Of a stretch of DNA of 64,000 bases, positions 46,427 through 46,850 are shown in pieces (the stretch's first letter is position 1; every line of letters starts with the position of its first letter). The notes under the pieces were generated by a model, which saw only the letters and a list, made by a program, of their open reading frames with translations, was not told the origin of the DNA and made no database searches. The DNA lies in assembly GCA_048772705.1 (NCBI GenBank), contig JBLWGC010000182.1, positions 62,001 through 126,000 on the forward strand, in the 5' to 3' direction. The translations under genes were made by a program, and so were the position numbers. Source of the DNA: Leidyana gryllorum EB-2025a. Lineage: Eukaryota; Protista; Apicomplexa.

Positions 46427-46850
46427 GTGCACTTCGCCCTCTGTCAAGTTGCATGTCACGTAGTACGGGGTATAGAAGCCCGAGGGAAACCTCGGATAGC
46501 TGCTTAGTAGATCGCAGGTCGCGTTTTGTCAGCTCCTTCAGGCTCCCCTTTCTCAATCGCACACGTGTGCGAGACGGTGAGGTGCGTGGTTCCCTACTGT
46601 GTCGATCAGAACGTCCAGGGGACAGTCACCCCCAATTATAGTGCCTTCTTGGGGTACGATGCTACGCTACGCTGTCTATGTATTCATTTCTTTCAAGGTG
46701 GGGTTGTATACATAACTTGGAAAAGACACATTGAGTTTCATGTGCCCGCGTTCTCAGCATTTTGGAATAAAGGGGTGCCGGAACTGCATTGATGGGTGCT
46801 GCTGTGAGGTATCACACGCTGTGGCCTGATGTGATAGAGGGAGAGCGCAC
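46427..46850 (+). ncRNA. Candidate ~424-nt structured ncRNA of unknown class
   Basis: Terminal helix 46427-46446/46832-46850, long-range helix 46515-46523/46820-46828, several internal hairpins incl. GAAA tetraloop; no credible ORF. Confidence 0.6.

Follow-up and report, generated by a model that had tools for sequence, protein, structure and literature searches.

An interval of about 424 nt directly behind a tRNA-Pro gene of Leidyana gryllorum (46427–46850, plus strand) probably encodes a paralogue of the RNA of RNase P, the RNA enzyme that trims tRNAs. The paralogue is placed outside the canonical family because the words of its catalytic core depart from the consensus. Its sequence makes descent from RNase P RNA very likely. 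The best explanation of the locus as a whole, for which the chances are about even on the features described below, is an old, single-copy nuclear RNase P RNA paralogue that would still be maintained and would no longer act as a standard tRNA 5'-processing ribozyme; we infer the loss of standard catalysis from the departures from the consensus. The first-pass annotation had proposed either a divergent RNase P/MRP RNA or a new class of non-coding RNA. The first proposal stands for the P type and falls for the MRP type, since RNase MRP RNA lacks CR-II/CR-III and P10/11 and keeps the catalytic centre (bioRxiv 2020.03.17.996132), and CR-II/CR-III and P10/11 are present here. In place of the second, a divergent extra paralogue of RNase P RNA is preferred.

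Genomic setting of the locus

The window is the whole stretch of 64,000 nt that was analysed (C182:62001-126000, in an assembly of 15.5 Mb and 237 contigs). The candidate RNase P RNA-like gene within it (descriptor tests; ends not mapped by reads) is single copy in the genome. It starts 10 nt past the tRNA-Pro gene and ends 17 nt short of the stop codon of a convergent multi-exon orphan gene on the minus strand (46868-48240; open frames, Markov model). The tRNA gene in turn starts 15 nt past the stop codon of a Na+/H+ exchanger gene on the plus strand, the final coding stretch of which lies at 43777-46329 (Pfam PF00999; gregarine homologues) and the nearest relatives of which are those of Gregarina sp. 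Poly1 (79% identity) and Blabericola. The Markov model classed the interval 46427-46850 as non-coding in 6/6 frames, and a reading of it as a coding exon was rejected on this basis. Spliced gene models were searched one exon at a time, and the 144-aa middle ORF of the orphan gene, the one ORF searched, gave no homologue when compared with 1.8 billion representatives. The 3' UTR of the orphan gene would extend antisense across the candidate RNA.

The gene directly upstream has been verified as tRNA-Pro(AGG) (46345-46416, plus strand) by ARAGORN and by Rfam (52 bits), in agreement with the first-pass annotation. It is a lone isodecoder, and we infer that it provides the RNA behind it with a promoter and a processing leader. 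The genome contains 260 tRNA-Pro 5' halves at ≤2 mismatches, mostly on small array contigs. Among these 260 related 5' halves the gene at 46345-46416 is the sole exact match, and it is the only C6 copy among the 100 of them that were listed. C6 is paired by G66 and thus forms a compensated pair. The few array copies inspected carry no T4 run in the following 30 nt. On the 3' side of the candidate RNA there is no T5 terminator before 48208, so that its 3' end is probably trimmed or its source is Pol II read-through.

Both canonical genes are present on contig C43, and the candidate RNA would therefore be an extra paralogue and not the sole P or MRP RNA of the organism. The RNase P RNA gene (C43:425950-426210, 261 nt, 62.8 bits) and the RNase MRP RNA gene (C43:426269-426581, 41.9 bits, below the Rfam cut-off) form a tandem pair separated by 58 nt, and the first T5 run lies about 29 nt past MRP. 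The candidate RNA has no primary similarity to the C43 RNase P gene beyond chance words. An Rfam scan of the region, which had been proposed as a means of recognising a known RNA, matched only the tRNA. The RF00009 covariance model gave no match to the candidate RNA at E <= 10, and the candidate is absent from the matches of that model in its own genome; the archaeal RNase P model found nothing across the genome. Another known RNA (MRP, U3, SRP, U17/snR30 or spliceosomal) is hardly tenable as an explanation and has been largely refuted. Two words, CUGA close to the 3' end and UUGAUG, are similar to U3 boxes, but CUGA has no box C partner, no U17 m1/m2 words were found by eye, and neither an Rfam match nor the box motifs place the candidate RNA with U3 or SRP RNA. 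Moreover, MRP, U3 and SRP RNAs are encoded elsewhere, U3 snoRNA in at least 24 copies, mostly in tandem arrays (e.g. C182:6508-12692 and C126:138156-142058), and SRP RNA in at least 10. Among the proteins, Pop1, Rpp29 and Rpp21 have one locus each and Pop5 has one weak locus; a second Rpr2-like match falls within an ORF that we take to be the largest subunit of an RNA polymerase. No protein paralogue dedicated to the candidate RNA was found, and PRORP gave no match in the genome, with a silent control.

A syntenic search in related gregarines, also proposed earlier, has yielded no locus with the candidate RNA (C-terminal exon, proteasome exon and orphan ORF as queries; two metagenome scans). 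The closest relative, L033 (run ERR10900107), is syntenic, and its contig ends inside the exchanger gene. In the more distant L034 and L035 the exchanger is followed immediately by another gene, with no tRNA or RNA there. Compared with window positions 39000-45750 (UFD1, nucleoside transporter, exchanger), the introns of L033 appear to be placed differently: it lacks some of the window introns and has two extra ones.

Architecture of the candidate RNA

The segments named by the first-pass annotation are all in the sequence. The terminal helix forms 7/8 and 10/10 pairs, the GAAA hairpin 6/6, and the second long-range helix (46515-23/46820-28) 9/9, of which 3 are G-U; the palindrome and the hairpins are likewise present. 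Three of the listed helices have a low pairing probability, namely 46545-49/46617-21 (0.00), 46630-54 (0.08) and 46727-44 (0.18), and are displaced by the stronger helices 46545-51/46769-75 (0.92) and 46598-603/46725-30 (0.75). The reading of the fold as P1-P3-P4-P19 was right, and it can be extended by a P2 that crosses P4 and by CR-II and CR-III flanking P11. With nuclear RNase P RNA (RF00009) the candidate shares the order P1, P2, P3, P4, P7, P8, P10/11, P12 and P19, the crossing of P4 by P2, the CR-II/CR-III pair on P11, the AGGUC core, and the spacing between P3 loop and CR-I. It differs from the RNase P RNA of its own genome in length (424 vs 261 nt), in its degenerate CR-I, CR-IV and CR-V, in P4 strands of equal length, in a longer P10 or missing P9, in a P12 of about 100 nt, in having no covariance-model match, and in being led by a tRNA.

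In the C-domain, the pairing probability analysis places P1 at 46427-46446 and 46832-46850, with a probability of 0.99 for the inner 10 bp and of 0.63 for a possible extension to 46420/46861. A 12-bp alternative helix, 46427-38/46576-87, is the strongest single stem and competes with outer P1 and P10. P2 was found by the descriptor; 7/8 positions of its 5' strand (46447-46454) pair with 46796-46803. Like the P2 of RNase P and MRP RNAs, it begins directly after P1, crosses P4 and stops directly before P19. Its 3' strand runs directly into hairpin P19 (46803-16, probability 0.93; the two together at 46796-46816). The P3 domain (46464-46509) consists of a weak lower stem, an 8/6-nt internal loop and a GAAA-capped upper stem (46480-95, probability 0.85). 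The own P and MRP RNAs have a common P3 loop word, RUACGAASU, and the 5' side of the loop in the candidate RNA (46472-79) resembles it at 7/9 positions with one gap. The distance from this word to CR-I is 40 nt, compared with 39 nt in the own RNase P RNA. The P4-like helix has a probability of only 0.02 in nested folding, with a competitor at 46455-60/46820-25. Since neither P2 nor P4 is probable in nested folding and this helix competes, the core would need proteins in order to form.

The S-domain helices, by comparison, arise unconstrained with probabilities of 0.7-0.95. The domain is opened by the P5/P7 5' strand (46530-46551), which pairs with 46769-46786, the inverted repeat I1, with a probability of 0.91-0.95 in the isolated domain. 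The palindrome (46557-46572, probability 0.71) forms a P8-like hairpin. An extended P10 and the 5' strand of P11 (46577-46603) pair with 46725-49 with a probability of about 0.75; in a weaker alternative 46577-97 is folded as P9, and the form with the long P10 is 9 kcal/mol more stable. On this folding model, a long P10 without P9 would shift the elbow clamp away from P4. CR-II, the first T-loop word (46605-46612), lies 1 nt past the P11 strand and agrees at 6/8 positions with the Rfam word ACCAGAAA. CR-III, the second T-loop word, occupies 46716-46730 together with the P11 3' strand, and its word at 46716-27 equals the RF00009 consensus cUUGGAAaagaC at 12/12 positions, against 6/12 in the genome's own RNase P RNA; it is the sole match at ≤1 mismatch within the 64-kb window. 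The CR-II/CR-III loop is closed by P10/11, with a 6-bp P11 of probability 0.75. Together, CR-II and CR-III make up the T-loops by which the tRNA elbow is anchored (PMC10966300).

Between CR-II and CR-III lies an expanded P12 region of about 100 nt (46613-46714), which contains a hairpin (46677-714, probability 0.77) and a short tandem repeat (46661-73). This repeat could be read as the template of a telomerase RNA, with a pseudoknot at 46677-724 and possibly an RNase P-like scaffold. A single copy of about 430 nt with a 5'/3' closing stem would suit such an RNA, and telomerase RNA, the inference of which has failed for Apicomplexa (PMC9841428), is not known from most apicomplexans. Yeast telomerase RNAs (TLC1, TER1) carry P3-like elements bound by Pop proteins and so share with the candidate an RNase P/MRP-type P3 in an RNA other than the canonical enzyme. 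However, these RNAs borrow P3 only; the candidate RNA also has P1, P2, P4, P19 and an S-domain, and no valid template or pseudoknot has been identified in it. The repeat has a P of 0.04 against shuffles and 0.15 against native windows. In the proposed pseudoknot, whose 3' strand is the CR-III word, a third loop of 1 nt would span a stem of 7-10 bp where a downstream loop of 6-29 nt is required; the long P4-P6 stem after the core is also missing (PMC8287931). The assembly contains no template-matching telomere repeat and no (T)TTAGGG trimer or array, and none is found at 80 contig ends. The Pfam TERT models gave no match, one of them with a silent control. Telomerase RNA is thus a very improbable identity. 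At least 150 reverse-transcriptase matches occur in the genome, many near contig ends.

The catalytic centre of RNase P consists of CR-I, CR-IV, CR-V and a conserved P4 uridine (PMC10966300), and it is here that the candidate RNA departs from the consensus. CR-I with the P4 5' strand (46512-46523, forming 9 bp with 46820-28) reads UCGCAGGUC against the consensus GGGAAGGUC and agrees at 6/9 positions, with 3.9 of 13.4 bits. The GGAA/GAAAG part had been reported absent, and it is missing, UCGC standing in place of GGGA; the AGGUC core is nonetheless retained, 6 nt past P3 as in the own RNase P RNA. CR-IV (46783-46791) matches AGUGCAAUG, the word in Rfam, at 7/9 positions, and its conserved G and A are substituted. 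CR-V with the P4 3' strand (46813-46829) scores 6.1 bits, compared with 17-18 for own P and MRP, and the invariant A before P4 is replaced; the invariant purines of CR-IV and CR-V are therefore not retained. The uridine of P4, U46519, is present. Because both P4 strands are equal in length, it can pair with G46824 rather than bulge, and bulging it requires G46823 to be bulged as well.

These features also bear on the view that the locus encodes a second, still active RNase P, or a P-derived nuclease with shifted specificity, in which the proteins force the P4 uridine out and put up with the changed core, so that extra capacity or a new class of substrate is gained, as in the case of MRP. Every domain is present, the AGGUC core keeps the metal-binding U, and P4 can be drawn with U46519 bulged on the condition just given. 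In addition, the tRNA gene load of the genome is very high. Against this, the changes in CR-I, CR-IV and CR-V remove purines that both P and MRP have kept, and MRP altered its specificity without altering the catalytic centre (bioRxiv 2020.03.17.996132). A still active enzyme is accordingly regarded as unlikely, though it deserves some weight.

With RNase MRP RNA (RF00030) the candidate shares the C-domain scaffold and a P3-type loop. In MRP, however, the catalytic centre survives and CR-II/III and P10/11 are gone; the candidate RNA presents the reverse. Neither the CR-I word GAAAGUC nor the GARAR loop in P8 that characterise MRP was found, the P8 loop being ACGU, and CR-II/III, the absence of which is the third mark of MRP, are present.

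Resemblance to RNase P RNA against shuffled and native sequence

As for global folding energy, the candidate RNA is no better than shuffled sequence (z -1.25 for the plus strand, -1.65 for the minus strand), in a comparison that the first-pass annotation had proposed. The genome's own RNase P RNA has a fold z of only -1.98, so that an ordinary z cannot be taken to refute an RNA gene. Pairing between the two ends of the interval from tRNA to stop codon is stronger than expected by chance (P ~0.01-0.02 against shuffles and native windows), and the top five stems in the interval are not above shuffles (P 0.37).

Resemblance to RNase P RNA was assessed with a C-domain descriptor, its ranges set to fit the genome's own P and MRP. 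CR-I, CR-IV, CR-V and the P3 loop were scored with weight matrices that drew solely on the Rfam consensus words and on the P and MRP RNAs of this genome. The descriptor recovers the topology P1-P2-P3-P4...P2-P19-P4-P1, with P2 crossing P4, in own P, own MRP and the candidate RNA. By helix energy alone the candidate is equalled by 3.6% of shuffles (P 0.036, optimistic like all P values of the descriptor tests, since the descriptor is home-made and was written after the sequence had been seen). When the motifs are added, it is reached by 0/481 shuffles and 0/490 native tiles. The S-domain descriptor is tied by 3/40,000 shuffles. The joint nested score is 34.2 bits against a maximum of 21.2 in about 19,000 evaluated shuffles; the own RNase P RNA scores 74.9, partly by construction. 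The 12-letter CR-III word had been chosen after its match was seen, and the test was redone with only the highly conserved Rfam letters. In this conservative form 160/60,000 shuffles pass the S-domain and 0/60,000 reach the C-domain motif score, the nearest having 16.1 vs 16.9. Genome-wide there are 12 CR-III-like words, and only the candidate RNA adds a good CR-II, P11 and a high-scoring nested C-domain. A window tile at about 3400-4070 (plus strand) ties the S-domain score, is absent from the top C-domain tiles and has been taken as chance. MAFFT could not align RNase P RNA structurally with either MRP RNA or the candidate RNA.

The resemblance might still be fortuitous, the interval being an ordinary intergenic stretch or an overlapping 3' UTR between convergent genes. 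The plus-strand z, the top five stems and the silence of Rfam agree with this, as does the fact that the conservative S-domain test alone also lets two further native loci of the window through, and genome-wide multiple testing has to be borne in mind. The joint tests, the occurrence of the motifs in the right order at helix-defined positions, and the location of P1 at both ends of the tRNA-to-stop interval argue the other way, and chance is considered decidedly unlikely.

Origin and proposed role

RNase P RNA pseudogenes are known (PMC2996960, PMC8509007), and the locus might be a non-functional pseudogene or relic of this kind. Like the animal pseudogenes and RPPH1-like paralogues, it is an extra genomic copy besides the canonical gene; its catalytic words are degenerate, it has no terminator, and L034 and L035 lack it behind the exchanger gene. 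The pseudogenes of those two studies, however, are still recognisable to standard models and annotation. The candidate RNA has no detectable primary similarity to its sister on C43, and yet its helices are complete and its CR-III has been preserved better than that of the C43 gene. The upstream tRNA is intact and has its compensated pair despite some 260 near-identical copies. A relic is thus judged quite unlikely. Selection is favoured over a recent decaying copy because CR-III has stayed at 12/12, against 6/12, and the other primary similarity is gone. Intact helices and CR-III without sister similarity, together with the exact-match tRNA and its C6-G66 pair, suggest an old, selected locus.

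Dicistronic genes led by a tRNA have been reported, among them tRNA-5S and tRNA-ncRNA genes in Yarrowia and tRNA-snoR43 in plants, and yeast RPR1 has a tRNA-like leader (PMC2566860, PMC12972900). The locus shares with these a tRNA or tRNA-like promoter directly upstream and no terminator between. It differs in that the passenger is an RNase P-like RNA with no T-run at its 3' end, and a dicistronic biogenesis is proposed by analogy. The candidate RNA would be co-transcribed behind tRNA-Pro, from the internal Pol III promoter of the tRNA or by read-through from the exchanger gene; it would be released by tRNase Z cleavage, and its 3' end may be trimmed back to P1. It would share Pop1, Rpp29 and Rpp21 with the canonical enzyme, because each has a single locus, and would assemble on them. 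Its two T-loops may grip the elbow of tRNAs or of tRNA-like RNAs. With its core purines changed, its P4 uridine pairable and its P10 probably longer, the particle would either not cut or cut with a different geometry. The most likely role would be that of a particle that binds, holds or sorts tRNAs in a genome whose tRNA arrays are very large.

That a duplicated RNase P RNA can take on a new role is known from MRP (PMC10966300), the one established case, in which the catalytic core has been kept. The candidate RNA may add a third, functional RNA to the RNase P/MRP family, a 'pseudo-ribozyme' that would retain the elbow clamp and the protein scaffold, would have given up standard catalysis, and would have a tRNA-binding or regulatory function in gregarines; this proposal is tentative, with chances somewhat short of even. 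If it is true, a paralogue maintained with the opposite pattern would be a further event of this kind, the second, and would offer a natural experiment on the importance of individual core nucleotides. The candidate RNA is open to tests, and the organism can be obtained from insects. Overall, RNAs of the RNase P family can sit below Rfam detection, and other genomes may hide some.
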